From contig CM060731.1 in the NCBI GenBank assembly GCA_030704615.1, positions 62,806,001-62,870,000 on the forward strand: DNA of 64,000 nt, written 5' to 3'. This document shows, piece by piece, positions 10,849 through 60,699 of the stretch. The notes under the pieces are model-generated. The model had not been told where the DNA came from. It searched no databases and saw nothing but the letters and a program-made list of their open reading frames with translations. The translations under genes were made by a program, and so were the position numbers. The DNA comes from Takakia lepidozioides. Its lineage: Eukaryota > Plantae > Bryophyta. Numbering within the stretch: the stretch's first letter is position 1; every line of letters begins with the position of its first letter.

Positions 10849-10884
<36 letters not shown>

Positions 10885-15197: not shown

Positions 15198-15270
15198 AGG
15201 CACATGTTGAAGGATTGAACCCGGGATCACCTAGGTTATGCACAGGCAAGGCACAAACACCCAACCACAC
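15198..15270 (-). mobile_element. tRNA-derived SINE head remnant
   Basis: Minus strand gtgtggttgg...gatcccgGGTTCAATCC shows an A-box-like and B-box spacing without a full cloverleaf. Confidence 0.45.
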
Positions 15271-15547
15271 TGTGTTGAATGTGCCGGTTAGGTAAGCTGG
15301 TGGTAGCAGTGTGTGACAACAAGGCTGAGGCTGTGACCTACACTGGTATTTATTTCCCTTCACGATAATCCCTCACTAGCATCTTGACAGGGCCAAGGGT
15401 TTTCTGCTAGAAATCACCGCACATGTTAACAGGGTCTTGAGTTTGCTCAATCCTTTTGAGGAAAAGAACCATTCTTATTGCGATTTAGACTCTGAAACTG
15501 GTAACAATTGGGGATGTGCCTTAAAGATAGTAAAGTTCCATCAATTA
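15271..15547 (+). pseudogene. Displaced degenerate copy of an exon, intron and next-exon start of the C2-like gene (source ~26761-27066)
   Basis: taagctggt.gtagcagtgtgtgacaacaagg.tgaggctgtgacc.acactggtattt ... ggtcttgagtttgct...gaggaaaagaaccattctt...ggggatgtgcctta is shared with 26780-27045. Confidence 0.85.
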
Positions 15548-15551
15548 TGTT

Positions 15552-17330: not shown

Positions 17331-18224
17331 GGCCCCATTCCTACTCCTCATATTTGGTTACTGCGAAAGAGGTTATTTTCTCCTCAAGCAATTGTTCAAT
17401 GTTCGTCTGCGTGCTTGAGGCTCTTGCGAGTCTCTTCTATCTTGGAGTATATGAGCCCTTGTGACTTTGCACAACATGCTACACCGTTGACTTTTCAATC
17501 TACTCATAAGTTGACCGGCAAGTGGACCCTCCGATTTTGAAGCTTGAACATTCACATGTGTTCTATTCTAAACCTTAGGGACGTCCTAAACCCTAAACTT
17601 CATTAGTGCTTTGCTAAAGTTCCGCGGTTAGCTTCTTTCTACAAGCTTTTAGTTTGAAAAAAGACTTTTTATTCCTATCATTGTTTGTCTTAGTTCAATT
17701 ATATTTGAGAGATATTGTTGACTTTAGCCAAGCCAATTTTAGGCTTTAAAAAGTTATATTTTCTCTATTTAGGCAGAGAGTTATTTTCTGTACATAAGAA
17801 AAACTTTTTCTTATTCTAGACGTAGAAATAACTTTCTCTTACCTATTTTGGACTTGTGCCTATTTGAGACAACCCCTTCCAGCTGAATAGTCAAAGTCCA
17901 AATATAGTTTGACATAGAAATAACTTTCTCTTACCTGATTTTGGACTTGTGATTCAATCACGTATATTTGCCTCTTTGCATATCTTTGCAGTTGCATCTC
18001 AACATCACTTCTTTTCTAGCTTTCTATCTCTCAGGATCAATGCTATTAGTTTCGGTTCCCATAATCTATATATCTACATATATAATGCATATATAAACTT
18101 TTTGGTTCGGATTGTGTTTTTATTGCACCCAGTGCACTTGCGGTCCGCATCCTGTTGCACTGCTACATTTGTCTCAACTCTTTTAAAAAGCCGAAAAATT
18201 AAAAAATGATATATTTCACAAGCA

Positions 18225-37937: not shown

Positions 37938-40849
37938 CGATTCTCGCGTTCTCGCGAGTGTTACAATGTTGCTGCCGTTCTTCCACACAAGAATACAAAT
38001 CTCAAGTACCAATCCCACCAAGGACCGTCCTGGCACTAACTCTCTAGTCTGATAGCCCCTTCACAATCCTCTTCTCTCCACCCAAGATTGTGGCCAACTG
38101 TTTCCTAATCCAGTTAAAAGTGAACCTGCTGAACAATGCCACAAGTTTTGTTGAGCGAATCAGGCACGACCGCATCATCATGCCTTTGCTACCTCTACAT
38201 GCAAGTTCTCCACATTCCCTAACTTACGAATTTTCCTCTTCTATGTAGGGATTGTCTTGCAACAAATCAGGCCCGACGCCTGGGACCCAAACCCTCTTCG
38301 ATTCCTTCTTTGAGGAAGGAAAACTGAGACATGAATTTCAATATCAAATAAACACATATAAAGATAGGTCGCGGATCCCCTGGACATCCTATCAAAATTC
38401 TTCACACAGACTGGATCAACATCACCCAGACAACAATCCATACCCATTGCGTGAGTAAAGTAGTATTACAGTAGTGCGTTTCGTAGACAGTCTGAACTGC
38501 CCGAATCATCAAAAGAATGGCAAATGGAAGTTCAGTGCCCTAAAGTTCTTCCCTCGGGTCACTTGCTACAACAAGCGTCATATTGACAGAAAGTACTGTT
38601 ACAGTAAACGGAAAAATGCATTCTGGGACCACGGAAGAACTCACCCGTCTCGATTGATTGTTTAAAGCCAGAGACGAAGGGTTATAATGACCAGCCTTCA
38701 AGGAAGAAAGGATTGCATGCATAGATCCATGTCATCCAGTTCCCAACACTAAACAAGCCGCAGCAAATTCCTTGCTCCTACTATGCTCACAACAAAGTGG
38801 GGAGTTCAGATTCCCAGGATTGGACTTCTCTCAACAACCTTCAGATATAAAGAGAACTAGAATCTGTTGAAAAACATACCTGCAGATCAATATTGTAGGG
38901 CACAAAACGAACAAATCGCTGAACTTCTTACGAGCCGGGAAACGAACAAGTACAGAGACGAAGCTTCTGACGACGATGGGAGAGAAAACGATCTCCACGA
39001 GAGCTGCTGCTCAATTTACCGCTGTTATAGGAAGATGAAGCACAGAATACTCTAATAATATACTAGAAAATATTCTTGAGATATCCTTATTCATTCATTG
39101 AAGTAATGCAGAGTTCTGAACACTTAACAGAAGATAGCGTTATCCCACATGATGTCCTAGAATATTCGTCTGTCCCAATCCGTCAGTTATTTTAATTGTA
39201 GCCCTTATCCAGTGACCTGCCTAATAAATAGACATTCTCCACATATATTTATGCGCTCAATTTTGGTTATTTTTTCCTTGCCTCTTCTTGCAATGAATTT
39301 GAGCCTCTCTGAGTGTCCCATTGACTATATAAGAACATTTTATTTTTTATTTTTATTTTTGGAAGGGGACTGAGGCCCTGCTCGAACTTTATTTATAATT
39401 ATTGGAGGGAAGAACACATACAAAATGTTCAAAATATTAAAAATCCAGATGCAAAAAGTTATCTAAGAAAACTAACAGAAATAAAAAAAGAAGAAGACTC
39501 ATTTTCCGCATGATGCGTGGTCGGGTTGTTGTTGTCGGCGGTGGGTGGAAACAATGACGGTGATAGTGAAGGATAGTGAAGGAGGCAGGAAAGTTGGGAC
39601 CAATGTTGGGCGGGTATCACATTTTTTAATACCAGCCGGGTCCTGGTATTGAGAAAAATATATTTTTCAATACCAGCCAGTTCCATAGTATGTGAATATT
39701 CACTTAATGCTAATATTCAATAGTAGTATGGTTTTTTATTTGTGGACGGGTATCAATAGGACAGGTATTCCAATCGTAATACCAGCCGGTTATAAACCCG
39801 GATATAAATAATTAAAAAATAATAATCACCAAATCATTAATTTAGAAGCATACTTGATTTCACAAAGTAAAAAGTAAAATTCAGACTTTGCATTACATGA
39901 TAATATTGCGGATTTTTGTACGCAAAGTGAAACGAGCTTTGTTAAAAGAAAACTGATTGCACGCCTCATTGTCAAACATACCAGCATCTACAATGAGGTC
40001 CTCCTCTTCATCAATCGTATTGTCTTTCAAGAAAAAGAAATCCTTGATCCCTTGCTCAACCACCTTGCAATCCGTCCCCACGTCATCCGGCCCATTATTT
40101 AAAATTAGCATTAATTTGTGGAAGTTGTCAACGCCAAGTTGACATTGCCTTACCAACATGTGCTAAGAAATGAGAAATAGTGACCGGCGCTTGGGGCTGG
40201 ATATGGCCTGACCCTAGCCCAACTTCATATCTATACCATGTGTATAGTCCTTGTTTTTGCCCATAGCACGGGTATTGCACCGGGTTTTTCCTTTGTCAAT
40301 ACCAGCCTATGTAGTGTATGGCGCACATTAGAAAAGGCCCGGGAGTTTAATGCGACCCCTTCGGTCTTGCTTGCGTGGCACCCCCCCGCCACCCTAGCCG
40401 CACCCCCTTCGCCGGCTCCTGCGCGGCTCGCGGTCGCTGCGCCCCCTCGCCTCTGGGCCACCCCACCCCTCACACCCCCCCCCCCGCGCCCCCCATCCCC
40501 CTCCCCGCCCCCGCCACCCCGCCCCGCCCGCCGTCACCACACCACATGAACTCTATGGCACATGACACCTGTCACCACAACCCAACATCGCGCGGGGGAC
40601 ACATCATGAGTCAAGAACATGGATCCATACATGGCAGATGACATATACATGATGGTCACGAAAGTAACATGATGACCATCACGAAAGTCACATGATGACC
40701 ATAGGCGTGAAGCCCTCACATATGCATGTATACACAAGGTTGTACATGTTCAAATTTGAAATTTAGTATTATTTTATGGATTGGGTCTACTTCTAGGATT
40801 TAGGATGGATGTATGTAGGTACGGATGGATGAGACCAGGAAGTATGTGT

Positions 40850-43778
40850 AATGAGAGGCAACCTCCAATCGTCACCTTCCTTTCATGGTCCTCTCAAACT
40901 ATTCTGACCACAAAAGCACAACGTGCAGCCAGTACCAGCCGTGCCTCAGGTCCCTGAATTGCGCCACGATATGTCTGTTGCCGAGAATGAAGAAAACATT
41001 GCATCCCATCTTGTTTTGCTTTGAAACCAAGTTCAAATGCCCAGTGTAGGTGCTTTTAACCATCATGTACTACAGTGACGTTTCCAATGGCATGGCAAGC
41101 CTCCTGGCCAAAACTCTGCCGAAGTCGACATTCCCTATAATCGAGTTGCTGATTTCATTACAGGGGAGTCTTCCCGTTCAGATGGCCCATGCACTTTCAG
41201 CAGGCATCAGCAAAGATGCCATCCAGAGGGGTCTCTCTTAGCTCCTCGCAGCAACAGTGGCAGAACTACAACAAGGTACATTGGGCTGCAGGTCATGTGT
41301 TGCAAGGGCTACTGAATGATTTCCACGAATGTCCGAGTGCCTGAATCCCCTTGGTGTCATAGTAACGGATTGTTTTTTTGTTATTGTAGGTATCACTTCT
41401 CATATGGTCCACAGGACAGAACTAGTTCCCTCTTGGAGGTTACCCCTGCAATGGCACACAAGAAACGTCGAGTGAAGCCTACAAAGAAGAAGGGGAGGAA
41501 GCCAAGAGCCACGGCCGCTTCCACTGAAGCAAAGCCAAAACAAATGAGGACCACACAAACAAAATCGGGGGAAGGCATCAAGAGGGGATGCATGTGCAGG
41601 TTTGTAGTGAAACAATGCTATGTGGACCCTGATATTGCAGAGCTGGTCTATTATGAAAAGAGACATGTGAATGGGGCTGGACAGGTCTGCCATGGACCTG
41701 TGCATCAAGTAGGTTGCGTTTCATTAGCTCCCCACCTGAGCGATGAGATGAAATCATGGGTGTTACACAACCTCCGTCTCGGACTAAGCATCAAGAAGAT
41801 AATGGCCAAGCACACGCAGAGGGTGAGGGAAATCATGGATGGGGGGTTCGAGGTTACTCGTGACACCTTCCTTCTTTCAAATGACATCCGATATATGGCC
41901 AACAAGTGCGATGAAGAAACATTCAAAAAGCACTCCAATGATGCACAAAGTGTCTGAATGTGGGTGCATGAAAACCCAAGAAGCGTTTTCTACTACCAGG
42001 AAGAGTCTAATCACCCTGCTTGGACGTAGAATGACAGAAAACTCGACCTTCCATTTGTGCTTGGCATACAAACTGATTGGCAGAGAAAACAGATGCTCAA
42101 AACACGGCCATCGTCGCATAGTTGCTTGTGATGCAACCTTTGGAACGAATGAAAAGAAGGTTCGTCAGATTGTTAACCCGAATTTCTTGAAAGCATGACA
42201 AATTACGTTCTTCGTGTGAAGTACTCTGTTTTGCAACCATTTCCTTTCAAGTCACTTCAGTTACACATGATTGTTGTTGTAGTACCCGTTATATACCATG
42301 ATGGTATTCGATGACTAGCTGAATGGTATTCCAGTGGCTTACATTATCACTACAAAGTGCAAAACCATCGATCTGACGCCTTGGATGGAGGCACTAAACA
42401 AACAAATGACAAGTCGGCAAGTAGACTGGCGTCCCAATGCATTTATTGTGGATGACGCTGATGTTGAAATTGCTGCCTGCATTAGGTACGTCCATGAACT
42501 CAGGCAATATGCCTACCATGATGTCTTGGTTACACATGAATTTCAGTTTACCTACCTGATAAAAGAACAGATCTGTTCGGGGGGATTGTGCTGTTTTCTT
42601 GTGCTTGTGGCATGTTCGCCAAGCCTGGCAGAAGAATGCAGTTGCAAAGGTGAAAGACCCAGTATTGCGAGCGGCTATCTTACAAGACCTGGCACAGATC
42701 ATGTACAATAGAAAGGAGACCTCTGGGGATGTAGGTGAAGGATGGGCCGTATTCAAAATTCTGGATCTGCGGGAGAAGTACCCTTTTGAGACATAATTCT
42801 GCACCTACATGGAGACGAGAGTGGCTTCCAAAAGCCAAAATGTGGATGAAAGGATCCCGCAATATACCTCATGCCTCTCAAGACACTAATGTTGCCATAG
42901 AAGCATACCACGGGAACCTAAAAGCGCAATTGAAGAGCACCAAAAGCGTCCTCGGTAGTAGGTGGGTGGATTGGCTCATCTCTGAAGTGACAGGTGATGT
43001 GCTAACCCATTACTGGTACATGTCACATGCAAAGGCATATGGGTTCATCCGAAGCAAGCGGCAGGAGGGATTTGTTTGCACTTCAATCTTGCTTGCCAAG
43101 GACATTCCAGATGCCAATGTGCATCTGCCTCATACACCCGGAGGCATTGCAACAGTTGAATGACACCGCCATTTGGCTATGACATATACTATCCACAATC
43201 CGGATTCTAAATGGGCATGTTGTGATTGTCATTGGGCCTAGAAAGGAAATATGTGCGCACACCAGGTGAAGGTTCTGAAGATGCTGCACCCCCAAGTGGA
43301 GGATGGGCTGATTGCAAAGTTCTGCGGTTCCCTCATGGGCACATGTAAAGGTGGCCTGAACAACTTGATGACTGGTCATGACTCCCCTTCTTCCATCCCA
43401 TCCTCTTTACAAACTGGTCTGACCTCCCCTTCAATGGCTCAGAGAACATCCGCTGGTCGAAGTCCACTGCCCAACCTACCTGCCCTTATCTCCACAGAAT
43501 GGCAAACTATTCTTGAACTGACGGATGACAACAGATTTCTCCAGCAACACCTTCTTGCCTTGGTGAGAGCTACAAAAGGAAAGATTTTGGACCTCACTGC
43601 CATGATGGAGGAGGGTCTTCAGTACCCTGCTGGGGAGCCATTTATGACTGTTGTTGATGATGGGAATGGAAAGTCACTTGCGCGCTACAAAGACTTTTTG
43701 GAGAGGCATGGCTACTCGGGAAATTACCCACCCGTGCCCCAAGATTCTAGGACCAGGAAGAGGTTGTACACCGGCTGA
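40850..43778 (+). pseudogene. Intron-containing MULE DDE transposase with a SWIM finger, inactivated by stops and frameshifts
   Basis: IPYNRVADFITGES, YHFSYGPQD, KRGCMCRFVVK, DATFGTN (42130), FIVDDAD (42451), CLWHVRQAW (42602), TNVAIEAYH (42900) and SWIM CDC..GNMCAH (43221-43262). Stops include TGA at 41955 and TAG at 42316. Confidence 0.9.
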
Positions 43779-45989
43779 AGGACTTCAGGTAAGCCAGCAT
43801 ATGGAGGTCTCATGGATCATGTCTTTCTCCTAGTTCTAAATTTCAGGTCTGTCATTTCCATGGGGTGTATGCTGAATTAATGGGAAATGAGGCTGGTCTA
43901 TGTAGGGATAATCTGAAGCAGCCCTTCCGACTGAACACGTCTTTTCAAATTTGTGTGTGCATGGAAATGGGATGGTGAACTATGAGGGGGTGGTGAAGTA
44001 CTTTGGATCTTAAATATTGTGGCTAATACATGTGATCTGCAAGAGACGGTGAGGAAGACCAATGCATCTTTTCACCTGCCAACGAGGACTTGTATGTTGC
44101 TTTTCATTGAGGTTTAGGGTTCACGACACACTCTGAACCGCCTCAGCGGATTTGAAACCGAGCTCTGTGTATTGTTGCCTCGAAGAGGCGACTTTCTAGT
44201 ATTGGAGACCATCATAACAATAGCATCAGATACAGGGCTCATTCTCTTTCGGTTTGTAGCCTCATAAAACTCTTACATGTGAGTTGGGATGTAGTTCAAC
44301 TTGCTGGGAGTTTGGATCTTTGGTTTGGGTCACTGTAGTTCAGTAGGTATTTCGAATCGGGAGACCTTCTTCAAATGCATGGGCTCGAACTCAGTTTCTC
44401 CATCATGAGGCAAGCATTTGCAAATGAAGATGGCATTCCAAATTTACACATTTACATGCATTTTTGTAGTTGAATACCTACTTTGAGTTGTTGGCCATGT
44501 ACAACTGTTTCATTTGAAGTTGGTATTGTTTCCTTAGCAAAGGACTAGCATTTAGGGTTCAAAGACATTTTCCAATGCTCTTTGGCGTCCAATACATAAG
44601 GTATTGAAGAACGATCACCCATACTTGTCTTCCACATGAAAGGGAGCATGCACAAACGACACGAATACAATGCCCATGGAATGTTGTTATTTATATGATT
44701 GCAGAGCATAGGTGCAAGGACAAAGCTGCCAGTCATGTTACAGGGAACAACGTAGACACAAATTCGTTCGGACCCCAAAATGTCAAGACTAAGCTTTCTG
44801 TCCATCATAAAATGCAGCTATGTTGCCCCCACTCCAGTGGGTTCAGATAGCAATAAATATAATGCCCCTCCAACCACGTTTGTGAACAAAACATCCCACC
44901 GAGAATCTGACTGTGGCAATGCTAATTCAAAACGACGCATCCCTCAAAAGCACCCGCCACTTTTTCCCGCCCTACTGTCATGTGGGTAGAGGCTGCCAAT
45001 CAGAGACATTGCCTCCACTTCATGCATGTGGACCAATGCGCATCTCCGCGGATGGTGGAATCAGTATCTCTTTGCTCTTCAAGATGCATGTGCCCATCCG
45101 AAATCGTGCAGCACATGACTTACCCCCTCCAAAAGTCATGTTCTCCAGCCTCACCGAACACATACTCTCCCCACACGACACTGCCATTCAGCACTCCCAA
45201 ACTCGTTGAATTTCCTCAGATCCCCTATTGCCTCGTCGCACTCTCCCTCATCCATTTGCCTGGCCTTGCTGCCTCTTTCACTTCCGCCTCTCGCACTTAG
45301 CAATGTCAGACGCTCAAGAAGGAGTAGGCAGCTCCTGGCTGCAAGAGGAAGCTTTTGTTGATGTCGACACTCACAAGGAGTTGGTAGGAGATATTACTGG
45401 CATCGTGGGGACTCGCAACTCTGGATTGGAAGCGTTGGTGGATTGGTCAAAACCCACAGTAGGGGATATCATTCTTACAACACATGTATCTGCATGTAGA
45501 GTGGGCTGGTCTGGCTTTTACAATGACACCAACAGTGCAGCTGCAAAACAGCCAAACACCGTTGTACTCGATCAGGTCAAGATTCTTGTGTGCTCCTAAT
45601 GAAGAGTGGGGGCCACATGCTTTGGGCCTGGACCCTTCGAAGGAGAATGAGTGTTTTCATATTCTTACCTTGTTTCAATGGGTGGATGAAGGCTGGGACT
45701 GCATTAAACCGCTGGATGAACTTCCTTCCCCCATCATGCGCAAGCTTCAGAAGGGTTGCAGACCTGAAAGACCTTGGACCAGGGCTGGTGACATTTGCCT
45801 AACTATTGAGGATGGAATGATGCATGTCATGTTTGCTTCCTTCATGCATTTGCGGAAGAACTCATCCTCGGTGTTTTTGCGTGTTTTGCCGCATTGGGGG
45901 AGCAAACACTTCCACCACTCAGTCTTTTTCTTTCGGTGGGATATGCGAGTGTGTGTTTGGAAAGAGAGAATGATTAGGCAAGAGGTTCA

Positions 45990-47640
45990 AGCAGATTCAT
46001 GCATGTGTGAAGGACTTTCTAGAGGAATGAAGGAAAGCCTGAACAATGTCGAACATAGTCTCTCCCTGCAGCTCTGTCACCAACTTTCAAGAGGTTTAAG
46101 AAACTGCGATCCAGGCTAAGTCTAAAACCCTGGCCATGTGGGGGTCTGATTGCTGGGCAGGTCACCCTCAGCAGGTTGATGCGTGTGTGAAGGACTTTCT
46201 ACAGGAATGAAGCAAAGTTCTCCTCAACCATTTTTTGTATACCAACATAAGTCCCACTACTGGACTGAACCCCTCACGAAGGTAGGTCTATCGCCTCTTC
46301 TTCTGCCCAAGAATGGATGCGGGGTCTATGGCCACAACGCTGTGGCAAAGAACGTGTCATGAGTACTCAAGACCATGTCGAACATAGCTGCTCCCTGCAC
46401 CTCTGTTCACCAACTTTCAAGAGGTTTAAGAAACTGCGATCCTTCCTGAGTCTAAAACCCTGGCCATGTGCGGGTATGATTACTGGGCAGGTCACCCTCA
46501 GCAGGTTGATGCATGTGTAAAGGACTTTCTAGAGGAACGAAGCAAAGGTTCAACAATCTCCTGAACCAATTTTGTATACCAACATAAGTCCCACTACTGG
46601 ACTGAACCCCGCACGAAGGTAGGTCTATCGCCTCTTCTTCTGCCCTTCGAATGGATGCGAGAATGGATGGAGCAGCCCAAATTTCCAAGAGGGGGGGTGG
46701 AAAATGATGTGGTGTTTGTGTGGGTGTGAAGCAGTGGGAGCTGTGGGGGCAGCGATATAGCATTGGGAGGGGATCATGGGCTTGCCCCAGGCAAGAGGGC
46801 CATGCAACCAATTTAGCTACCACATGACCACTGGTTGAAACAGGTAGTTAGTAGAAAGAGAGAGTGAGAAGGAGAGTATAGATACATGAGCTAGAGGTGT
46901 TGTGGAACCTGGGTGGGTGGTTGAATGTGTGGGCAGCAGCATCCAAGGATGCTGTAAGCTACAGGGAGAGGGGCTGTAGTACCAGTAGTTAGTGGCGTAG
47001 AAGCTAGGGAACAGGGAGGGCAGACTGCAGATTGAAGATGAGCAAGAGGGTCCTCTATATGAGAGGGTAGTATGGGTTTATGGGTGTCAAAGAAGACCTC
47101 AATGTACTGGGTAACATAGCAGCTCTGAGGCATGCATGTAGTACAGACAGTAGGGTGTGTTAAGCTGGTGTAAGGCAAGAGGTAGGGAGTGTGGAGGGGG
47201 GGAATTACCATGAATTTGGTATGTGTGTTGATGCAGGTGCTAATATAGGGTAGATCTGGTGGTGTTAACAGTGGTGGGACAACATACAGTCTCACATCAT
47301 CTAGCGTAGTCTGGGCGGTCCGTTGAAAGGGGGCTGGGCAAAACTTGGTCAGCTGCAGGTCTCCCCCAGTAGGTTGATGCATGTATGAAGGACTTTCTAG
47401 AGGAATGAGAAAGCTGCAACAATCTCCTGAACCAATTTTGTTTACCAACATAAGTCCCACAACTGGACTAAACCCCGCACGAAGGTAGGTCTATCGCCTC
47501 TTCTTTTGCCCAAGAATGGATGCGGAGGCCGAGCCTTAAGCCCTGGCCATGTTGGGGTCTCATTGTTGGGTGGGTCACACTCAGCAGATTCATGCATGTG
47601 TAAAGGACTTTCTAGAGGAATGAAGGAAAGCCTGAACCAA
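45990..47640. repeat. Internal modular direct repeats of the MULE (a ~330-bp unit plus partial copies)
   Basis: aaggactttct at 46010, 46190, 46520, 47388 and 47603. cacgaaggtaggtctatcgcctcttctt occurs three times. Confidence 0.85.
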
Positions 47641-50148
47641 GAGTCTTCAACTCATACCAACTCTGAGAGAAGTAATTGTTACGACATGCATGTACTATAT
47701 GTCTGAAGCCGACTTTCATGTACAAACCCCGAAATAGGGAGGCACAAAACGAGAGTCTGGTGCAATGAATTCTGCCAGTACCAGGTCGTCAATGAAAATA
47801 GGACAGTCTTACAATCACTAACCATTCAGTCCTGCATAGCTGCGGACCTCATCCTCCAAAAACCCCTTAGAGGGGTCTACAACTATTATGCCATTCTTAC
47901 TTTCTGGGATGAGTTCCAGAAACTCTTGTACCCATCCCTCTCCCATATCTACATGGTACCCCCAATCCACAACACCCTCTCCTTCATAGCGGCTGCTTGT
48001 GTGGTGCCAGGTCTTCAACACAAGCCTGTCCACGAAACCTAACAGCACATGGCACAAACCCACAGCTCCTTGCTCATCTTCATCCATTGTGTAGAAACAC
48101 TTCAGATCGCCCATGTGGACTGTCATTGTCCTGACTCCTCCCTGGATTTTGTAAACCCACACTTTGTCCTGCCCCCTCTTCCGTTTGCAACTTTTCAAGA
48201 AGGCGCAAGATGACCTCATGGGGAAAATGGGCTGGCAATTCTTCAAATCCTGCATAAATCTTGCAGAGCCTGAAAGCTACACCCGCCCCAAATCCCATTG
48301 CAACCCTCAACTTGATAGAGTAGTCTCCTCGGAATATGTAAATATTATAGTGTGTGGAGAAGATGACTCCAAAGAGCTATGACTTTCTTAGAAGAACACC
48401 AGGAAAACAATGTATACAGGAGACGACTTGGGTAACCCTAAGATAACAACAGAACTTCCTGACACTCCCTCTCAAAAGAGATGATGTGAAGAAAAACAAC
48501 GATGAATCACATGAAACACAGAATGACCCTGTGCTTATATTCTATTTTTCAACCTGCTCTTCCACAAGGTCTCGGTGGGACAAACGTGAACTCCCCACCT
48601 GCAGAAAAAACACATATGTATATCCCATCGAGGGTTGCACTGTGTAACGGCTGCACCGTTACACATGGCATTTACATCCGTTTGTCATCCACCCGTTCTG
48701 TGTAGTCATCCCCCTGTCGGATTTATCAACTTCACTTCTTCTCCTCTTATTCAATTGAGGTTAAGTAAAGTCTTTGTCCCTAGAGAATGAACCTAGCTTT
48801 ATAAAATGTTGTTATGTACACATACACAATGAATACATCGTTCCTCTTGTGCTCAACATTCTAGAAGCGCTAATGTGAATGCTCGTCACAGTTCGAAGAA
48901 AACAACCAACTTGAAGATGCACGCAGCTTGTCTTGCTCTTGTGCAATTCATGTGTAACAACATGTCAGATTTGCAGCATGACGCTACCATTCCATCAGTA
49001 ACCCATACGGAATGAATTTGCAACATTGTACATGGCCCAATATGAATGCAAGTGGCAGTATGAACAGGAACCCTAAAATACCAGATGCATTGAGGTTTTG
49101 TGAGCATAACCTGTTGTAATGTTACTCAATTCACATTTGTAGTCTCTTATTTTGCATGTGAGAGGGAGTGGCGAAGACTTCGACAATCTTAGTCTGCATG
49201 GGGTTGGGTTGGCTTGTGTGTCACGGAATAGAATGTCCATGCCAGGTTACAATTTACATATTTTACCAGCAACAGGACCTGGTGCAAAATTGAAGCATAA
49301 CAAATCACCATTGAGAACATAACTGTGAGAACCATGGTTCAGAAAAATGGTACAGACCGTGGATATAATCGTGTGACACTGTGACCACATGTCTGGAGGC
49401 ATAAGTCCTGAATTTTGTGAAAGAAAGACTCCAATGAAGGTACATACGGGAACAACTGTTTTCTCGAATACCCCATTTGGATCGCCGATGTGCATCCCAT
49501 GGAACGATGAAGTCTGTAACGTCTGCACGGTTACACATGAAGTTTCATCCATTCTTCTATCAGTTGTCTTTTCATCTGCCAACCATCATCCGACACTATC
49601 ATCCTCAACCCTCATGTTATGCCACTGTTCATCCCATCGATGGATGAAATATGTGTGCATGCACGGTTACACATGATTGTCCATCCATTCTTTTCTCAGT
49701 TGTCTTTTCATCCGCATATCATCATTCGTTTGTCTCCTCCTCAAACCTCATGTTGTTTTGGCGCGTAAGAGGAAGGTGTGCTTGACTGTACCTGTGGAGG
49801 CTGTTTCAGTTGGACAGTATTATGGCTAATGGCATTGGTATGTCCACAGAACCGTCGCAGATCATTGTGTACTCTGCTCAGTTGCAAGTTCATCTTCTTA
49901 CGGTCCCTGTTGTGATGATGCAGTGTCTGTTTACACGAGTATTGTGGAGAAAATGTGTCATATGGAGCTTGGTTGCTTGGCCTTCATGTGGAGCGGCAAT
50001 CGACGAGGTTGATCTTTGTTGCGAAACGGAATCCAGTTGTTGCCGCCGGTGAGAATCGGAATTGAATGCATTTCATGAACTGAATGTCTGTGATGTTTGA
50101 GAAAGTGAGGTTGCATTTTCCTCCTCTTCTTTTCTTAAGGCTGCATAG

Positions 50149-51352
50149 GTTATAGCCTTCGCGCCATCCGATAATATTCCGACTCTTGCACTTGGAACAA
50201 CTGCTTATGTGACCATCTGCCTCAAAGCCCCAAAAAACAGTGAAACATGGGAAGTGGCATATGTTTAGTTTCTTCAGTTCTGAAAATCAGTAATGTATAT
50301 CTTCATTGTTTTTGAAGGAGGCAGTATACAGTGGAGGTGAACCTCACTCGTTCGAGACCAGGGCTGGTTAAGTGTCCTCATGAAGATTTTGCTTTCGGAA
50401 TGTTGATGAATGCTTTCCCAATCAGTCTGGGGCGAGGGTGGCAGTGTATCAGGGTTGGCGGTTTCGCAGCTCTAGTCGTTGGTGACCTGGCAGACCGCAT
50501 TTTGAACTGGCATATGTTCAATTGCAGGTTAAGTCGCAACTGAAAAAGCACACTCGCACTTAAGTTTGGGCAAAGGCAGACACATTTCAGGGCGTTTGTT
50601 TTTGGTACCGGGGTTTCCAACTTCCTTTGGGCTGCTTTTCATTACGAACTCAGGTCATGGCATACTATTTAGGTACGAATGGCAGTCTTATTGAAGTTGC
50701 CATTGAAGATCCCCGCGATATCTCGGATGTACTGCAACCGCGATTGGCAGGGACACGCACTGTCATTGCAAACATTTTGTTTGGTTCTAGCATGGAGAAA
50801 TTAGTGTGTCTAGAAGGAATAGTGTTGTTGTACAAGCCGAATGCCCCAAAGTCATATGCTATGCAATATGTTACTATGGGGGTTCCTTTGTGTATTTGGG
50901 ATGTGATTGCATGTGCTGCATAGGCAAAAGGATTTCATGTGGACACAACCATGAAGGCTCGGATTTCTGGGGACTTGTGGTTGGAGGTGAACCTGCGGAG
51001 TCCTCAGAAGATCTTCAGCATTGTGGAGGCAGACGAGACCGGGTTCATATCCAAGGTCCCCATTGTGGACCTGAAGAAGACCCTCGCTGGTATAAAAACT
51101 AACGTGATGGTGAAGGGTAGCTTTACAGTGCGACTAAAGAAGCAGTATAGGGTTGAGAGAGGAGAGCATAGTGTTAGTTGGTCGTTGGGGCTCACTCCCA
51201 CTACTGCTTTTTTGATTGACAAAACCGACATCGATGAGACTTCTGCCATGGATGAGCTGGTGCAGGACTTGGGTGCTCTTAGAGTCAGTCCAGCCCTCTC
51301 AGCTTTGCTTGTAGGTGGGGCAGGATCATCCACGCGAAAATCTGAGAAGTAA
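50149..51352 (+). CDS. Putative spliced orphan ORF carried by the MULE (function unknown)
   Basis: Consecutive protein-like open segments 50331-50527, ~50654-50870 and ~50923-51352 are partly bounded by splice-like sites. No family was recognised. Confidence 0.35.
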
Positions 51353-53568
51353 TTGATAATGCTTCATAGAAGACACGGTCGACGGCTTAAGGTAGGGATC
51401 CAATTGAGTGCATGTGTTTGCTCTTTCAAAAACTGAGGCTGGAGTTTGTGGGGCAATTCATAAGTATTGCTGAACTAGAGGAACTGCTTGGTCGTTCAGT
51501 ACTGCCTCATTTGCACCAGAAGTGCATAAGGGGTTGCATACAAATGTGCATGTTCCATGCTGAAGATTTGAACAAATGCTGCTGAAGCAAGCATGGTGTG
51601 GTCTGATTGCATGTGTTTGTCCCCCAGCTTTAAGAGGGCTATGGGTGAAGTGAAATTCAATTATGAAGGGTACCTAACAGTTGGTAAAGGCACCCTTCAA
51701 ACCACAGTCATCCATATGTTCACACAGAACTTGCTGAGATTTAATTAAATGCATATGAAACCAATAGGCATTTATGCATAATATTGTTTGCTTTCGTAAT
51801 CTTCCTTACCTGGGGTGATACCTTCAAGATTACATTCAATTGGCCTAAAGCAATTAGCAGAAGGGAAGGGACGTTTCTTATGTGTCACTTACCCTTCTAC
51901 ATACAGGTCACATGGGAAGTATGTAAATTCAGAAGGAATGATTTTGCAGCTCCCATGATGCTGGCAAGGCAGGCTTGCATTTGTGCACCCTGAAATCAGA
52001 ACACATCAGTGGATGAAGTAGAAGAAGTGTATATTCCTTGGGAGATAGGGATGGGTACAAATTGGGGCCGAAGTATGAAAGGACATTTGAACAGTTATTT
52101 TATTTTTGGTTGATAGGCACCATTGTTGTAGAGAAGTGCACAGGCTTCGGTGAAGATGGAGGAGAGCAGGTATACGAGGAGGGGAAACATCAGCATATTC
52201 AATCCTTTCATGTGTTTGAATGAAAGACAACGGCAAACTGAGATGGGGGATGGAGAGGCCCATGTGTTCAAACATTGTGCCATAGACATGGAAATGTATG
52301 GACCACAACATCCCGAATTTCGTATGTTGGTGCAATCACGGTTGGTGCGCATTATAGACAACCATCATGCCGATGTCAGGTGCCCTCTGTGTATGTATCA
52401 CTATGGAAATCCGAATGGCACGCATAGAGAACCTACACTTCGTTGATTCACCATTGTGCAACACACTGGACCTCATGGCGTGTAGAGCACAGGTGCTTGG
52501 CACGAATTATATTCAATATCATTGCTGAGAGACCAATTGCCACACTGGCACTAGCACAATAACATTCATGTGATTGCGAGAAAGACTGATTGCACTGGGG
52601 TGTGCATTGTGCCCATTTACAATTGTTGCATGGAATGGTATGTGCGGGGTGTTACCAATTTCCTTTACATGCAATTCCTGGCTTGCTTGTATATGCAATG
52701 TAGGCATGTGTTGCATGCATGGAGCTACATTGAAATACCCCAGTTACCAGTGCTTGTCAACATATACTTGTTGAAACAGTCCTAGTCTTCAGTATTGGGC
52801 ATTATGTCACTGCACAATACATGTAAGCAAGGAAACGGAATAGTAATGTGGCACTGTGAAGTGAGTGTGAGCAGATTGTGGGGCAACGGGGATCCCATTG
52901 GCTGCCATCATGTTGAACAGCATGCCCTTGAATCGAAAACATTAGAGAGAAGGAAGAGACATCCCGAAATAGCATACCCCAATGTAGAGAAGGGGTGACT
53001 GGGGGTAGGAAAGAGGGACTGAAGCGAACTTGCAAACAAAGCAGAGAAAAAACGTGCACTGACGGTCGAATGTGCAGCCTGTAAGAAGAATAAGACACAG
53101 TTGTGGGAAGCAAAGGACCACAAAAATCAACGCAGAAAGGTAGACAATTAATAATTAATACTTTATGTAGCCAATTGTATCCAATGTCACAACGCTTTGC
53201 CGACTTTCCTGGCTCGTTTACAACGTCTGCGTGTGAGGGGAGCTGGAGTGGTGGCCACAGGGAGGACAGGGCTGCTGCAATCTCCAACTTTGCGTGGGGG
53301 TTTGGGCACTGCATATGGTCAATACCTGGCCTACCTCCTTTAGCCCTGGGTACACGGCCTTGGTACAAGAATAACCCTGAGTTTTTAAAGAAACTCCCTT
53401 CTTGAATAAGTCCTCTATTTGCAGTCTTGCCCTGTGCTCCTCCACATGCACCTGACCTGCGGGCAATCGAAACAATTGCTGGAGGTATAAGAGAGGTACA
53501 AGAGTACTTACTAATTCAACTCCCTTCACCGTTGTTGTTCCTGTCCTTGGCTCAAAGTTCTGCAAGAA

Positions 53569-53840
53569 TTGGTCCATGGCGACATCTTCGGAGTTGGAAT
53601 TGTACCAGATGTCATTCTGAACAATACCCTGGTGAACATGTTTGCAAAATGTGGGTGCATCTAGGATGCAAAGGGAGTGTGTTTGACACTATGGCTGAAC
53701 GAGATGTGGTGTCGTGGAGTGCGATGCTTGCAGGGTATGCAAGACAAGGACGTGGGATGGAGGCTTTGGAGAGCTATGAGCAATGATGGGGGGGAAGCAC
53801 ATCATGTTTGTGTGCATTTGCAATGCTTGTGCAAGCCTGG
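53569..53840 (+). pseudogene. Captured PLS-class PPR gene fragment
   Basis: VHGDI..GIVPDVILNNTLVNMFAKCGCI*DAK.VFDTMAERDVVSWSAMLAGYARQGRGMEALE, with a stop and frameshifts. Confidence 0.88.
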
Positions 53841-54084
53841 CCGCCAGCCTGGATCTGATGTGAGCTGCAAAGAAAGAAGAACAAAGAATGCAAAAGCAAG
53901 CAATGATCATTGTTAGAAATTCATACAATTTTCGTAAGGATATTCATGTTCATTCTACCTGATACATGGATTCAGCACATTGCGCGAGCACATGAACGTC
54001 CATAACTAAAATAGGCAGCAAATGATCATGTAAACCACGAGCATCTGCCTCTTACCGGGCCTGCACCACCAGGTTGTGGATTCA

Positions 54085-54760
54085 AGTACGTTTGCACTAA
54101 GTACAACTCAATGTAATGAGCTACAAACAGACCACACTGCCATGTGTTGGCCTGCTATGGAACAGGCAGGCAGAACCACCGCTTGAGGTCAGTCGCATCC
54201 TTCCACTGGGGGCTTCCTGGGCTGATTCCTCTGACCATGGCCCAGAAAGTAGCAAACAATGGCTTGAAAGCACGGTATTTGTGCAAACTTCTTATGCTAT
54301 TCAAGTGAAGGTAGCGAGACGGTTCCAAGATAACCAGACTCCAATGGTCACTGCACAGGGGGGCAACAATAGCAGGTTAGTCCACATGTAGCAATGGAGC
54401 ATGGCCTTCTTCAAAGGTACGGCAACAAGAAGGTAGAAATGCATACACATTGTACTCACTTGCATAAAATTGGCACAATAAGGGCTTCAACACCCTCACT
54501 CCTGAAGAAGGGGAACCGTCTTTGCATCCAAATCCGCACAGAGTCGACTTGATTTGCCTGCTTTGCACAATGATCGCGAAGGCATATCCATGTGAAGCTA
54601 TCTACAACACGAATTTTATTGCACACATGTTCAGGAAGAGAAAGTATTTTAACTAACACCCAGAAGTCCATCAGACGGTCACTAATCCACCCCCTTGCAG
54701 AGAGCAAGTCATTTGCATCTTCTAGTCTAAGAGGAACTTGCGAAACCCGAGAGCCCTTCA
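54085..54760 (-). pseudogene. Ulp1-like (peptidase C48) SUMO-protease domain, 2 exons (intron 54459-54351)
   Basis: GWISDRLMDFW..VVDSFTW..LIVPILCN|DHWSLVIL..HLNSI..VP*QANTWQCGLFV. His and Cys are present, the catalytic Asp reads Asn, and one Gln codon reads TAG. Confidence 0.85.
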
Positions 54761-56850
54761 AAAACCATATGTCATGTGTTTTTGCCACCACTGCACCACT
54801 GCCCCGCATGCAAAAAAGGCACATACCTCATTGCTATGAGAATCCGCCCACATAATTATGCACATGCGGGCCACTTGCAAGCTGTGGATGGAAGGTATAC
54901 CATATCATGCATGAAAAAGGGTGCACAGGCGTCGCAACTCACTACACGTTTTTGAGGCCTTCACGTATCCTGCACATCCAAGAGCCCAATATGTCAATGC
55001 ATGTGCAACGTCGTGCATACACCATTTCCAATCTGGAGAGGAGAGACCGTTAACATTAAAAAAAACCACAATGACACTGGATAACTGGACATGATTTTGT
55101 TGCGCTGCAATGCAAGTGCTGGTTGGGGCAACGCATCCTTTGCCTTGGCAGCAACCATGGTATGGATGGGCTTGGGTTTGGCAAAGGTAGCAATGGTTAC
55201 ATTTTTATTCAATGCCCGGACGCTGCCATGTACATCACCATGAAATCGTGTAGTAGCCTCTGTACTGTGAGGTGTATCAGCACCATCAAACAAGATTTGG
55301 TAAGGTCGCATGGGCAAAGGCAGTGCGAGAACCATCGCATTGGGGGTGGGAGGCTCTGTCCCATGTTTAAGCACTGAGGTAGCTGGGGTAACGGAAGATC
55401 CAACAGTGCTTACTGCATGTACAATAGCACCCTCATGAGTGGGACATCGCATATTAAGGGGTGGTGGACTTTGGAACTCAGTTATGTCATAGAGGGTTTG
55501 TTTTGAAGTGAAAGAGGCCACAGGGGGAGGCGGTCGACACAATCCAGGAAATACCTGAGTGGCGCTTAGTTCCATTTCAAGTTGAGTCATGGGACCTGGT
55601 TGTGGGCACTGTATGTCGCCACAGTTTCTTCAGCAGGCAGGATCGTTTGGGCCTGAGGGAGGACAGGATCCGACAGCACATATTCTACCATGGCATTGTT
55701 GGCCTCATTAGAAGGTGTGGAATTGCATGCCATATTAGCGGCCAAAATGAGTGCCCCCATGTTCGTATTTGTACTCACGTGAACGAGTGCGCTTGACTGC
55801 GGTTCAAGGACATCCGCCTCCTTATGTCCACACTTGGCATTGCAGAAACGTGCCTCATCCCTTGCGAGCCTCTCAATGTGGACCTCATGGAGGATTTGTC
55901 GGGCAGCCTCAAGTTTGTCATGTAGGCTGGATTCCCCGTAGTCAAGACAGCCTGCACACCAACATCGGCATTGTGAAAATGTGGCCGTGACAAGAAATGA
56001 AATGAGAACAACACCAGGGACATTGTTAAGAACCACCAGGAACTGAAATGTAGTAGCACGAACCGTGGTAAGGGCAATACACACCTGGTGGACAGGGAAG
56101 CCAGCCCATGTCGACATCCTCCCGATGCTTCAAATTTTTTGTTGAAGTCCTTCAAGGCTTTTTTCTTGCCCCCTGCACCATCAGTTGGTATACTCCCACA
56201 CCACAATATTCTGAAGGCAATAGGATTCAGAACGGCGAGGTCACGCACAGCCCTGCATCGGACCTGGCGCATGAAACAATGCAGATCTTCAAAAAAGTGT
56301 TCGCAGTCCTCTTTCCGCACTCCCCGAAGGGCTGCAAGCACTTCACGCACCTGGGTTTGGGCTTCCTCGTATGGGGGTATGCCTCCGTACAGGAAGTATC
56401 CAATCTGCAGGAAATTCTCACCCGCATTTGTAATGGCACACTGGCCATCTTTTGTGTTGAGAAGATGATTTTGGAAAGTTAACAAGATGGAATTTCGGGG
56501 AATTGACATAGGTTTCATGTTGTGAACGTGAGACATCCAAACCAGACGGATTACCCTGCTGCAAAGCGGAATGTTTGGAGGTGGAGCGTGGTGGCGAACA
56601 GCCTCAAGAATGACCATCAACCTATCATATTCATCCTCAGAATGTGTGAACATATCGGGGGGCAACTCAGGGATCTCACCTGCTGCAACAATTTGGTACA
56701 GAGGGGACTAACCCCCCTCCTGTTTCTCATCATATTGTTCTATATCCCATTTTGCCATGTTGTCGTCAACAAACTGCCTTCTACAAGCCTCCAACTCAGA
56801 CTGGGCTGCAATTCCTTTCATTTCGAAATCCAGCAATGCCATGGCATACT

Positions 56851-57368
56851 CAGGGTTGCACACGTCAGTGACGTCACGTCACGTCAGTTTTGCCGAAAAT
56901 TCAGTAAAACATGAGTTAGGTAAAAAATATGCCACGTAGGTGGACACGTTGTATTCCAAGCGACACCTTGGCAAGTGAATGAATTGTTTAATAAATTACT
57001 CCATCCGCCAATATTTGAGGTCATTTTTAAATCATTATTGTTAAATTGGTGCGACCTCCAAATGGTGGTGGTCGCAGAATTTATCTTATTTTTTAATAGT
57101 TGCGATCACCAGCAGAGGGGTTGTCGCAGCATTTTTGTTTTAAAAAAAATAGATGCGACCACCAGCAGGGGTGGTTGCATTTTTTTCTTTTCTTAAACAG
57201 TTGTGACCACCGCTACTGGATGCGACCACCATCAGGGGGGTGGTCGCAACATTTTTCTATTTTTTAATATCTGCGATCACCAGCATGGAGTGGTCGCAGC
57301 ATTTTTCTGTTTTTTTAATAGGTGCGACCACCAGCAGGGGGTGGTCGCAACAATTTGCTGTTGTTTTG

Positions 57369-57399
<31 letters not shown>

Positions 57400-58035
57400 T
57401 TTTTTCCCCTTAAAATAATCTCTGTGACCACGAGCATGGGGTGGTTGCACCATTTTTCTTTTTTTTTAATAGGTGCGACCACCAGCAGGGGGGTGGTCGC
57501 AGCAATTTTTTGTTTTTTAATATCTGCAACCACCAGCATGAGGGTGGTCGCATCAGTTTAAAAAAAAAAATAACATGCGACTTCCTCGCACCCAATTTAA
57601 AAAAAAGAAAAAATATGCGACCACCCTCTGCTTGTGGTCACACCTATTAAAAAAAAAGAAAATGCTGTGACCACCACCTGCTGGTGGTCGCACCCATTTA
57701 AAAAATAAATAAAAATGTGCGACCACCCCCTTCTGGTGGTCGCACCTATTTTTTTTTTTTTAAATTGTCCGACCAACCGTTGCTGATGGTCGCATGATTG
57801 ACAATATAAATCATAATATATGAATTTTACAGATAAATAATGAAGTCCACGTAATGAGGCCACATCGGTTGCCACGTCGGTTCTCATGATAAATAGTCAA
57901 TAGTAAAATAAAAAAAATAAACATATTTATGTGCAATAACGTCCGTTTAGGACGTGACGTGACGCACGTCCGTCGTTGACATCGGACGTGACGCTGACGC
58001 GTCAATGCCACGTCACGCCGGAATTTGCAACTAAG
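56851..58035. mobile_element. Nested 1,185-bp non-autonomous hAT-type element with an internal palindrome array
   Basis: Perfect 8-bp TSD GGCATACT (56843-56850, 58036-58043), ends CAGGGTTGCA / TGCAACTAAG, and ACGTC/GACGT subterminal repeats. Confidence 0.88.
57050..57795. repeat. Array of ~14 palindromic units TGCGACCACC-N6-8-GGTGGTCGCA with A/T-rich spacers, ~51-bp period
   Basis: Units at about 57050, 57101, 57154, 57221, 57272, 57323, 57423, 57474, 57525, 57576, 57615, 57666, 57718 and 57768. Confidence 0.9.
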
Positions 58036-58841
58036 GGCATACTTGTGATGTGCCATCACCAGTTGGCATTCCGCCAACTGAGCGGGATGGTCATGAGTTA
58101 CTCTAGGACGTATGGCAAATAGCTCCACCACATTTTCCACAGCTGTCTTCTCCTCTAGAGGTGCATCAAACTGCTCCCCCGCCATTGCAGAGTCATGGAG
58201 CTGGTCAGTAATAGAGGAAGAGTAACCAAAAACCCTAAACTTGAAAGACAACTTCAAACAAAATGCAAAGACACGCATCATCAAAGAAGGAGTTGTGACC
58301 ATGAAGGTGCAGGGCAAGAAGAATGTGTGTTACCCGTCGTTTAAGCCACCATTGACCAAAATCGTTGCCCATCATTTGGTCCTCGAACTCAAATTTCCCA
58401 ATAAGAGCCACAAGACGATTGAGAAAAAGGCTCGTCCAGAGATGGAAATCCGTCGGGCAACAAGTCGAACTTCATCAGATAGGTCAGTCCTGGGCATGAA
58501 ACAGGTGCGGGTATGGGAGGCACAACAATATCCGAGATCAGTAGCAATGACGCCTTGACAAAGCCTTCCCTTGCCTCTTCTCTACTTAGCGGTGCAAGGG
58601 TTGTGGACTTCAGAATGTGCACTGGAGGTCTGCCATCTTGTCTACCTGAAGATGCAACTCCAACGTGCACTTCGGGTTGAAGACTTTGCTGCGGTACGAT
58701 AGGAGGTTGTACAAACGTAGAGTTTACAATGTGCTCAAATGGAAGACTTTCCTGTGATGGCAGAGGTGCGTCCAATGAGTCTTTTCGAATGCGCTGAGGT
58801 CTAACAGTCTGCTGTGGCAACGCAGGTGGTGCGTCCAACAT

Positions 58842-59321
58842 CTAGAAATCGTCATCGTCATCATCATCGTCAAGGTCCACTCCCGGCTCCTTCTGAAGAC
58901 TCATGTGCTTCCTGCGCTTAGGTTCTCGTGTAGTCTCTTCTACCGTCGTCTCCTCGCGTTCTACCCTCGTCTTCATCAACTTGCAGGAAAGAGGCTTCAT
59001 CCCGTGCTTACTAAGAACAGCCTCCATGATGTGCCTCTGCCCCTTTTCAAAAACAGGGTACATTTTCAGTTTAGGCCCACCCTTTCCCACAGCAACATCA
59101 CAGCCATTTATCCTGTGAATGTTAAGTTTCTTCTTATCTTTATATTGCTTAAGACAGTGGATACACTTGAATGGCTTCCTATTATCATCACCGGGCTGCT
59201 CAATCCTTGCCTCTGAGTGAGCCTCACATATGAGATTTTCCCACTCATCAGAGTCGTACGTTTCATTGTATGTCCGACGCGCTTCGTGCTTGGAGGATTG
59301 TTTCACCATATCGGCGCCCAC
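58842..59321 (-). CDS. ORF with a single C2H2/C2HC-type zinc finger and an acidic tail, near the right TIR of the MULE (possibly reading through a premature stop into 58389-58841)
   Basis: KPFKCIHCLKQYKDKKKLNIHRINGC. The 150-aa ORF follows in the same frame immediately after the TAG. Confidence 0.55.
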   Translation of the reverse strand: MGADMVKQSSKHEARRTYNETYDSDEWENLICEAHSEARIEQPGDDNRKPFKCIHCLKQYKDKKKLNIHRINGCDVAVGKGGPKLKMYPVFEKGQRHIMEAVLSKHGMKPLSCKLMKTRVEREETTVEETTREPKRRKHMSLQKEPGVDLDDDDDDDDF

Positions 59322-60699
59322 TCCAAATCCACTACCCTCCTCCTGAAGAATCCTCTAGCAGAGCAAAGGTTGTTGGAATGTGAAAGCAAGAACTCAAACT
59401 AAAACATGAAGCATGCAAATGGACTGCAACAGACAGAAATGGCAAGCAAGAGGAAGAAAATAGCTGCAAATCTCACGAATGACTTCCAAATTCTCCAAAA
59501 AGAAACCCTGTACTCAAGTCAAATGAGTAATCGCTTCACCACCACAACTCAGTCAACAGTTTATAACAACCGCGATGCATACTCCTCAAGGAAGTGCTTA
59601 TAACACTGCTTCCGCCGGGATCATACATTTCGGGCCATGCAAACGCCAGGAAGCTTGGAAAACCTGTCCTGTGGCTGCCATGAATTAAATCAATCAAGCA
59701 TCGACGTGAGGAGTGACAGCTGAAGGGCCGCATTCGAATCGACAGGTCCTCCATGTGCGTGCGAACTGGACGCGAAAAGCACGAAAGCATGATCATCGCG
59801 ATCTCCCTACGGCCATATATGAGTATGTGTCACATCCTGTCATGTCAAGCCGTCCATCATCATGGGTGATTGCAGCACATGGATCATGTTGCATTCCATC
59901 CATCTTTCGTCATGCGATGTGTCCCGCGCGCGATGTTGGGTTGTGGTGACAGGTGTCATGTGGTGTGGTGACGGCCGGCGGGCGGGGGGGGGGCGGGCGT
60001 GAGGGGTGGGCTAGCGCGGGGGGGAGGGGCCCCCGGGGCAGAGCGACCGCGAGCCACGCAGGAGCCGGCGAAGGGGGTGTGGCTGGGGTGGCGGGGGGTG
60101 CCACGCAGGCAGGACTGAAGGGGTCGCATTAAACTCCCGGGCCTTTTCTAATGTGCGCCGTAGTGTATTGACCTGGGTATTGGAATTGTCAATACCAGGC
60201 GGTTCGGTTATTAACCCTAGTATTACAACAGCCAATACTATTCGGGCCGGTTATTTAATACCCTAGTTGATACCCGGCCATGCAGAAATAATTATGCATA
60301 TGGTCAATTAATTGATTATTCTGATTTTTTTGAATTATTAAATTTCCTGAAACACATACCAAACTCCTATATCTGGTTAGGCAATAATTAATTCAAATTC
60401 AAAGTGCCTAATGCATCTTGGGAAATTTTTAAATTTTGGCCTAATTGTTTGGAACCTATGGGACAAACTTAAGTGGCTATTTCTTCGAAATTTGAGCACA
60501 AATTTTCAAACCTTTCTAATGTTGTTCGTAATAAGAGGAAATTTTCATTGAACAAAAATCAATACACACATATACGGGCGGATCTACCTACGAAAGCTCC
60601 ATGTAATTTCGAAAGGCCCTACATAGACTCGACAATGTCCTCATATTATACTGATCCTCATCAGTAGTCCTCATGATCTTTCCATCTACCTCGTCCATC

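Follow-up and report, generated by a model that had tools for sequence, protein, structure and literature searches.

In MuDR, the second gene lies on the opposite strand and converges on the transposase gene. Other Mutator-like elements (MULEs) carry an Ulp1-like domain behind a non-protease N-terminal part near the transposase, as in Kaonashi (KI-MULE/KIU) and VANDAL and in Ulp1-MULEs of melon, rice, and grapevine; the Arabidopsis Kaonashi/VANDAL elements are MULEs without terminal inverted repeats (TIRs), and a review dates the capture of Ulp1 to about the monocot/eudicot split (PMC13317346). Here we describe a 19,840-bp element at positions 40320-60159 of a 64,000-nt window, by which we mean the whole stretch of DNA analyzed, taken from Takakia lepidozioides (CM060731.1, 62,806,001-62,870,000; all positions follow the window numbering). 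We consider it likely that the element is a dead copy of a multi-copy, autonomous-type MULE of a moss-like plant, equipped with a transposase gene and a helper gene with zinc-finger and Ulp1-like parts. With MuDR it has in common the long TIRs, a 9-bp target-site duplication, D-D-E candidates with a C-terminal SWIM finger, and a convergent second gene, but it is 4 times the size, resides in a moss-like plant, and has a second gene unrelated to mudrB by anything tested. It shares with the Ulp1-carrying elements the arrangement given above, whereas its TIRs of 244-286 bp set it apart from the non-TIR ends of Kaonashi/VANDAL, as does an N-terminal helper part made of a C2HC finger and a moss-related helical domain, which no Pfam family matches, VANC's included; the clustered short target motifs of Kaonashi/VANDAL were not found in the element. 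Like Pack-MULEs, it encloses a piece of a host gene within its TIRs, here from a PPR gene, but Pack-MULEs are short and without a transposase, and this element has a (dead) transposase gene. Ulp1-carrying MULEs as such are thus already known, from flowering plants. Added here are the homology of the N-terminal 600 residues of the helper to a moss gene with conserved neighbors, a nested hAT-like insertion, a list of the defects in this copy, and the lack of a coating word.

The assignment to MULEs is carried by the ends and the target-site duplication, which comprise the following features.

40311-40319 (no strand): left copy of the 9-bp target-site duplication, GTAGTGTAT, identical to 60160-60168
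40320-40605 (+): left TIR, 286 bp, G+C-rich with a C-rich tract mid-way, aligned with the right end
40647-40702 (+): subterminal 23-bp tandem repeat, CATGATGACCATCACGAAAGT-like, seen as a repeat in the sequence
59916-60159 (-): right TIR, 244 bp, aligned with the left end
60160-60168 (no strand): right copy of the duplication GTAGTGTAT, directly abutting the right TIR

The 43-bp tips (GGCGCACATTAG...) at 40320-40362 (+) and 60117-60159 (-) are identical, and shuffles of the window give no such pair. The TIRs align in blocks at 92-98% identity, with indels in the C-rich tract accounting for the lengths of 286 vs 244 bp. Long TIRs (usually 100-500 bp) and a 9-bp (8-11 bp) duplication are marks of the Mutator superfamily, and by these the element is a MULE, inserted as one unit. 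A chance pair of unrelated MULE ends was rejected because the 9-bp duplication is perfect; a match of this length at fixed places is expected by chance at ∼4e-6. The intact ends and perfect duplication claimed in a first-pass annotation, made by a model from the sequence alone, are therefore upheld. Words similar to the CATGATGACCATCACGAAAGT-like repeat also occur inside the right end, and we infer that these subterminal repeats are putative transposase-binding sites. No second occurrence of any part of the element was found elsewhere in the window, and scans for Rfam families and tRNAs returned none.

At the left end lies the gene that the first-pass annotation had called a MULE-SWIM transposase on the + strand, and its exons do align in order with those of relatives.

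41079-43775 (+): MURA-type transposase pseudogene, its conserved exons aligned with relatives
41580-41609 (+): N-terminal Cys/His region, KRGCMCRF, aligned with relatives
42124-42150 (+): DATFGTN, DDE candidate, read by eye and conserved in alignments
42442-42468 (+): IVDDADVE, DDE candidate, read by eye and conserved in alignments
42894-42923 (+): AIEAYH, DDE candidate, read by eye and conserved in alignments
43218-43262 (+): SWIM finger CxCx9CxH, read by eye as CCDCHWA*KGNMCAH

The relatives were reached through short unnamed proteins matched by one transposase exon in a word-indexed search, which led to their contigs (L004-L006), and through three JGI metagenome contigs (L007-L009). The exons are collinear with the multi-exon relatives (L004-L006 and L009) at 29-61% identity, and the alignments also take in the motif CLWHVRQAW. 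The L004 exon homologous to the window transposase matches the Pfam MULE family PF10551 (E 0.005), and an open reading frame (ORF) of L006 matches SWIM PF04434 (E 0.027), both below Pfam's cut-off; these matches support the predicted transposase identity but do not prove it. Judged by its transposase, the element is thus probably a MULE. The alignments place in-frame stops within the conserved exons at 41955, 42027, 42316, 43161, and 43239, and the gene is therefore dead. PDB sequence searches with the transposase pieces gave nothing useful, an Atlas search with one exon was uninformative, and the ORF at 41316-41954 (+) has no record as a called gene. No helper gene was found near the related transposase of L008, a 17-kb metagenome contig.

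The second gene, which we call the accessory or helper gene, occupies the - strand from the right end. All three features that the first-pass annotation had reported there are present: a zinc-finger ORF, a long frame, and Ulp1-like motifs. The part of this gene with a moss counterpart is laid out as follows.

55952-59309 (-): moss-gene-homologous part, with the start MVKQSSK at 59309, from collinear moss protein matches
59100-59171 (-): C2HC zinc finger, a sequence motif
58333-58171 (-): GT-AG intron 1, from splice signals and a contig that skips it
about 56082-55952 (-): GT-AG intron 2, from splice signals
56707-56141 (-): helical domain, from a structure model
58842-58844 and 56708-56710 (-): stops
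58426 (-): 2-bp deletion
56136 (-): 1-bp insertion
A nested insertion, described below, completes the defects of this part

The 310-residue frame, searched exhaustively against proteins, had six matches. The best was a hypothetical protein of Ceratodon purpureus, P0001 (KAG0615240.1), at E 1e-14, and a Physcomitrium protein was also among the six; a bacterial cadherin-repeat protein was taken as spurious. A word-indexed search with the same frame, in which only proteins of similar length are candidates, was blank. Comparison of P0001 with the window by tblastn gave four collinear matches.

59309-58998 (-): P0001 residues 1-105, 49.5% identity, E 6e-27
58589-58416 (-): P0001 residues 214-276
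56851-56141 (-): P0001 residues 344-580
56133-56041 (-): P0001 residues 583-608

The frame changes between these matches fall exactly at sites where other copies of the family differ from the window copy: the other copies are longer by two letters after 58426 and shorter by one at 56136. A G at 58844 in these copies turns the TAG of the window into CAG, and all three indels needed for the helper frame are present as differences in other copies. Both intron positions coincide with in-frame read-through inserts in prokaryote-style moss gene calls (P0014 and P0002), and both introns are therefore shared with the moss gene. A 129-nt contig skips about 58172-58339, which fits intron 1. We then joined the frame by skipping intron 1 and the nested element, placing an N at each break and adding no real letters, and compared this reading locally with the proteins already fetched, database searches having been made exon by exon. 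The joined frame has 632 codons and two stops, and its residues 1-625 align with residues 1-592 of Physcomitrium P0009 (29.5% identity, E 7e-73). The finger, C-x2-C-x12-H-x4-C, is invariant in all helper and moss members of the family. Since the alignment with the moss gene runs from end to end, the long frame and the zinc-finger ORF are one gene; they can no longer be listed as separate items, as in the first-pass annotation, nor can the long frame be called an orphan.

The model of the helical domain is a confident one, with a pLDDT (predicted local distance difference test) of 82.8. No convincing fold match was found with Foldseek against PDB, Atlas, or VIA-wide; only the long first helix matched coiled coils, and the VIA-wide rows span this helix only, so that the globular part was barely tested. 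The model of the zinc-finger region (pLDDT 52.6) is too poor for a structure search, and Pfam lists for the zinc-finger pieces a weak C2H2-type finger (E 0.04-0.08), far below the cut-off.

Downstream of the moss-gene-like part, a linker leads to a stretch with the motifs of an Ulp1 protease.

54997-55951 (-): linker exon, following the moss-gene-like part and preceding the Ulp1-like domain, with a 211-codon open frame
54122-54827 (-): Ulp1 (peptidase C48)-like domain, broken, from motif order and Atlas neighbors
54660-54689 (-): WISDRLMDFW, Ulp1-like motif
54326-54349 (-): His box DHWSLVIL, Ulp1-like motif
54296-54307 (-): HLNS, Ulp1-like motif with Asn where the catalytic Asp is expected
54122-54169 (-): LPVP*QANTWQCGLFV, with a stop at the expected Gln (54155-54157) and the Cys box QCG kept (54131-54139)

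The motifs follow the order His, Asp, Gln, Cys, which we take to be the expectation for peptidase C48, and clusters of PF02902 (Peptidase_C48) account for 7/30 feature-based Atlas neighbors of this piece. On these motifs we accept that an Ulp1-like domain is present and that it is broken in the window copy. The accessory genes, which the first-pass annotation could not assign to known families, can thus be placed as a moss-gene homologue and an Ulp1-like domain. One additional letter at 55622, which some other copies have, would bring the linker into frame with the upstream exon, and because the 211-codon frame is continuous with this change, one gene from finger to protease is likely, its frame continuity in part reconstructed. 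The whole helper gene including the Ulp1-like part contains three stops, three frame-shifting indels, and the nested insertion; together with the transposase, eight stops stand in frame across the present copy, so that both genes are broken. We also note a 439-nt contig from X7, a run guessed to be RNA, that fits 53965-54164 (200 nt, 96.5%) and then continues into unrelated sequence from 54164, just upstream of the Ulp1 Cys box; the break may mark a splice joint, or the contig may come from a different member of the family.

That the element belongs to a family was seen in a copy survey, in which contigs of four sequencing runs were aligned to 53900-59890 (5,991 letters). X1 is a DNA run with the same organism label, possibly the source sample, and X5 is a plant metagenome from a second study. 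In X1, 1,586 contigs fit this stretch at 85% or more, the majority of them probably on the nested repeat. At single MULE positions there are 2-12 distinct X1 contigs, with a summed word depth of about 140-730, mostly 250-500 (contig depth, not copy number). X5 also contains the right 6-kb MULE stretch. With several distinct contigs at single sites, the right 6 kb must be part of a multi-copy family. Where the other copies differ from the window copy, the changes are predominantly A>G and T>C. The TIR tip has no match in the JGI metagenome contigs.

Exon 2 of the helper gene holds a younger insertion.

56851-58035 (no strand): nested hAT-like non-autonomous element, 1,185 bp, from its 8-bp duplication and an empty site
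56843-56850 and 58036-58043 (no strand): 8-bp duplication, GGCATACT, of the nested element

Its ends, CAGGGTTGCA.../...TGCAACTAAG, are of the short hAT CAGGG type and are identical at 7/10 places, a weak match. The joint 56842>58036 occurs in one contig each of X1 (depth 301) and X5, with 8 letters fitting both sides, as expected of an empty site. Because the depth of the X1 joint equals that of the adjoining MULE, the skipped 1,193 bp are absent from most copies. Word depth in the nested block reaches 3,600-17,800 in X1 (10-60x the adjoining MULE). The CpG observed/expected ratio is 1.10 in the nested block vs 0.47 in the MULE core, and the lack of depletion suggests that the nested element is young. 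It is younger and far more abundant than its host MULE. No long ORF, and hence no hAT transposase, was found within 56851-58035, so it would be a non-autonomous member. The subterminal repeats of the element are rich in ACGTCA, and its interior holds about 14 hairpins in an array with a 51-bp period, perfect 10-bp stems (TGCGACCACC...GGTGGTCGCA), and A/T runs between them; the hairpin has a folding energy of -12.7 kcal/mol (z -5.5). After insertion of the MULE, C-to-T decay and this younger insertion have left a copy that can no longer encode either protein. The window copy is a fossil and has no functional interest alone.

Between the two genes lie repeats and reading frames of less certain standing.

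45990-47637 (+): internal repeat modules, five 55-nt units and three roughly 290-bp units, non-coding, from repeat comparison
50564-51349 (+): candidate third reading frame of 262 codons, interrupted by a single in-frame stop (50921-50923), from the ORF list
53406-53913 (+): frameshifted PPR gene fragment, with ERDVVSWSAMLAGYARQG at 53697-53750, from a PF01535 match

The protein-like frame at 50564-51349 may be a third gene of the element. The PPR fragment, which is probably captured host DNA, matches PF01535 at E 5e-4, below Pfam's cut-off, so that this item of the first-pass annotation is borne out, if weakly. Pfam and PDB searches with the other central pieces (43.8-53.9 kb), the 262-codon frame included, gave no match, and no gene can be assigned in these central 10 kb. 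The repeat blocks reported between the genes are there, and the one at 57.0-57.8 kb belongs to the nested hAT-like element. A short motif coating the element was sought and ruled out: CATG is in twofold excess, but this is a product of CpG decay (CpG observed/expected 0.47, with TG and CA at 1.4) and vanishes under a low-order Markov expectation. Once the TIRs and the nested element are removed, no word exceeds that expectation, and only local 55-nt and 95-nt modules remain.

Taken together, these parts suggest how an intact copy might work. A + strand transposase would consist of a DNA-binding Cys/His region at the N-terminus, followed by a DDE core and a SWIM finger; it would bind to the subterminal repeats and the long TIRs and move the element by cut-and-paste, leaving a 9-bp duplication. 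The second gene would start near the right end and run towards the transposase. Its first roughly 625 codons would encode the C2HC finger, a coiled coil, and the all-helical domain, and the Ulp1-like cysteine protease would follow downstream, most probably as part of this gene. If the VANC/KIU genes of VANDAL elements in Arabidopsis are a guide, the helper protein may aid escape from silencing or transposition.

The moss homologues of the helper are uncharacterized proteins with a C2HC finger, a CPGLW motif, a coiled coil, and a helical domain; they belong to no Pfam family, and full-length P0001 has no Pfam domain. Their genes were inspected at four loci.

L001, Ceratodon, 10001-12838: Cullin upstream, PEPcase downstream
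L003, ENA assembly, 9003-11828: Cullin upstream, PEPcase downstream
L010, Physcomitrium, 10001-12999: Cullin (weak) upstream, other genes downstream
L011, protein only 47% identical to that of Ceratodon, 6212-9253: Cullin not seen upstream, PEPcase downstream

No transposase was found near the gene at any of these four loci. From its position, the moss homologue reads as a resident gene that keeps its neighbors across the four assemblies. Three related proteins were found in Physcomitrium. KAG0615240.1 of Ceratodon purpureus and XP_024399261.1 with its paralogues of Physcomitrium patens resemble the element gene in ∼600 collinear residues, the same finger, and the two intron positions, and differ from it in being resident with conserved neighbors and in having no Ulp1 domain. 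Identity of the moss members to the Ceratodon protein is 47-76%, but to the transposon copy only about 30%. In a tree of the helper family, the transposon copy has a branch of 3.1 changes per site vs at most 0.7 among the mosses, too long to be placed. A 23-kb Logan contig (L002) holds, at 8852-10900, a distant relative of the moss gene (24% identity) with the same finger and architecture and the same first intron position; no transposase match to the reading frames of the element (E <= 1e-3) was found in the 20.9 kb fetched from it.

Several results weigh against reading the element as a dead autonomous-type MULE with a transposase and a fused helper. Pfam returned no match, PF10551 included, for the window's own transposase pieces, and neither Pfam nor PDB sequence searches matched the Ulp1-like pieces; over 36 window pieces, Pfam listed only the weak PPR and weak C2H2 hits and no family at threshold. 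RNA-like evidence for a helper transcript is confined to the 129-nt contig, whose run was identified as RNA by guess only. The evidence for a multi-copy family comes from the right 6 kb. The absence of a clustered target word weakens the analogy with VANC. Finally, the C-terminus of the moss homologues is a low-complexity tail with no Ulp1 domain, so that the fusion may be specific to the element, or there may be two genes. On the latter view, the Ulp1-like stretch would be a third gene of its own, or a dead, captured piece without a role, and the helper gene would end before it; the fact that no transcript joins the two parts speaks for this arrangement. We think it unlikely, however, given that the two parts lie on the same strand and in order and that, with the one-letter difference of other copies, the open frame continues through the linker towards the Ulp1 exons. 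A further possibility concerns the size of the unit. If the real family unit were only the transposase and helper gene, roughly 8-10 kb, then most of 43.8-53.9 kb would consist of captured pieces of host DNA and of insertions that nested there later. In favor of this, one nested insertion is proven, the PPR fragment has been identified, the central ORFs lack Pfam and PDB matches, and the segments show local repeat modules and shifts in GC skew. No further inverted-end pairs with duplications and no direct repeats resembling long terminal repeats were found inside, however, and CpG decay is uniform (0.39-0.49 in four blocks over 40.6-56.85 kb, with 0.68 in the right-end 1.9 kb) and differs from that of the nested hAT-like element; as early as 53.9-54.1 kb, the word depth is level with that over the genes. 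Such a composite seems to us doubtful. The first-pass picture of a giant cargo-carrying MULE holds in that the element is a MULE by its TIRs and duplication, carries more than a transposase, and is multi-copy in its right part, but no less than 1.2 kb of the "cargo" arrived later, as a nested insertion. To that extent, the accumulation of nested insertions which the first-pass annotation had itself raised for the internal 16 kb is real, with one 1,185-bp hAT-like insertion proven.

For a dead MULE with a fused helper, which we continue to prefer, the origin of the zinc-finger/helical part can be read in two directions. The MULE lineage could have captured a host gene as DNA (transduplication) and fused it to Ulp1, in which case the part is not an old transposon gene. 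Host-gene capture by MULEs is known (PMC13317346), the moss homologues sit at loci with conserved neighbors and no transposase nearby, and both intron positions are shared, as expected if genomic DNA was captured. Against this, identity of the element copy to the moss genes is no more than about 30%, its branch is very long, and shared introns fit domestication, the reverse direction, equally well. We rate capture as falling a little short of an even chance. For the reverse course, the finger/helical gene family would have been invented or long carried by moss MULEs and domesticated as the moss resident gene, with the module fused to the Ulp1 helper in the MULEs of this plant, giving a bryophyte counterpart of VANC/KIU that arose separately from the flowering-plant one. 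This scenario is speculative, and we would not expect it to be the right one.

In either direction, the helper homology is a concrete case of gene traffic between transposon and host, and it offers a first functional hint for the moss gene. Physcomitrium is readily transformed, and since it has the moss gene, with its three related proteins, knock-outs would be feasible there. With the Ulp1 capture dated near the monocot/eudicot split, the moss case should be independent or much older; a TIR-bearing Ulp1 MULE family in a moss-like plant would thus mean that Mutator and Ulp1 were joined either a second time, independently, or much earlier.

The DNA into which the MULE inserted has a character of its own. 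On both sides of the insertion site (39750-40310 and 60169-60290), words of the GGTATT/AATACC type recur every 10-20 bp, and this surrounding DNA looks like the subterminal region of another transposon.

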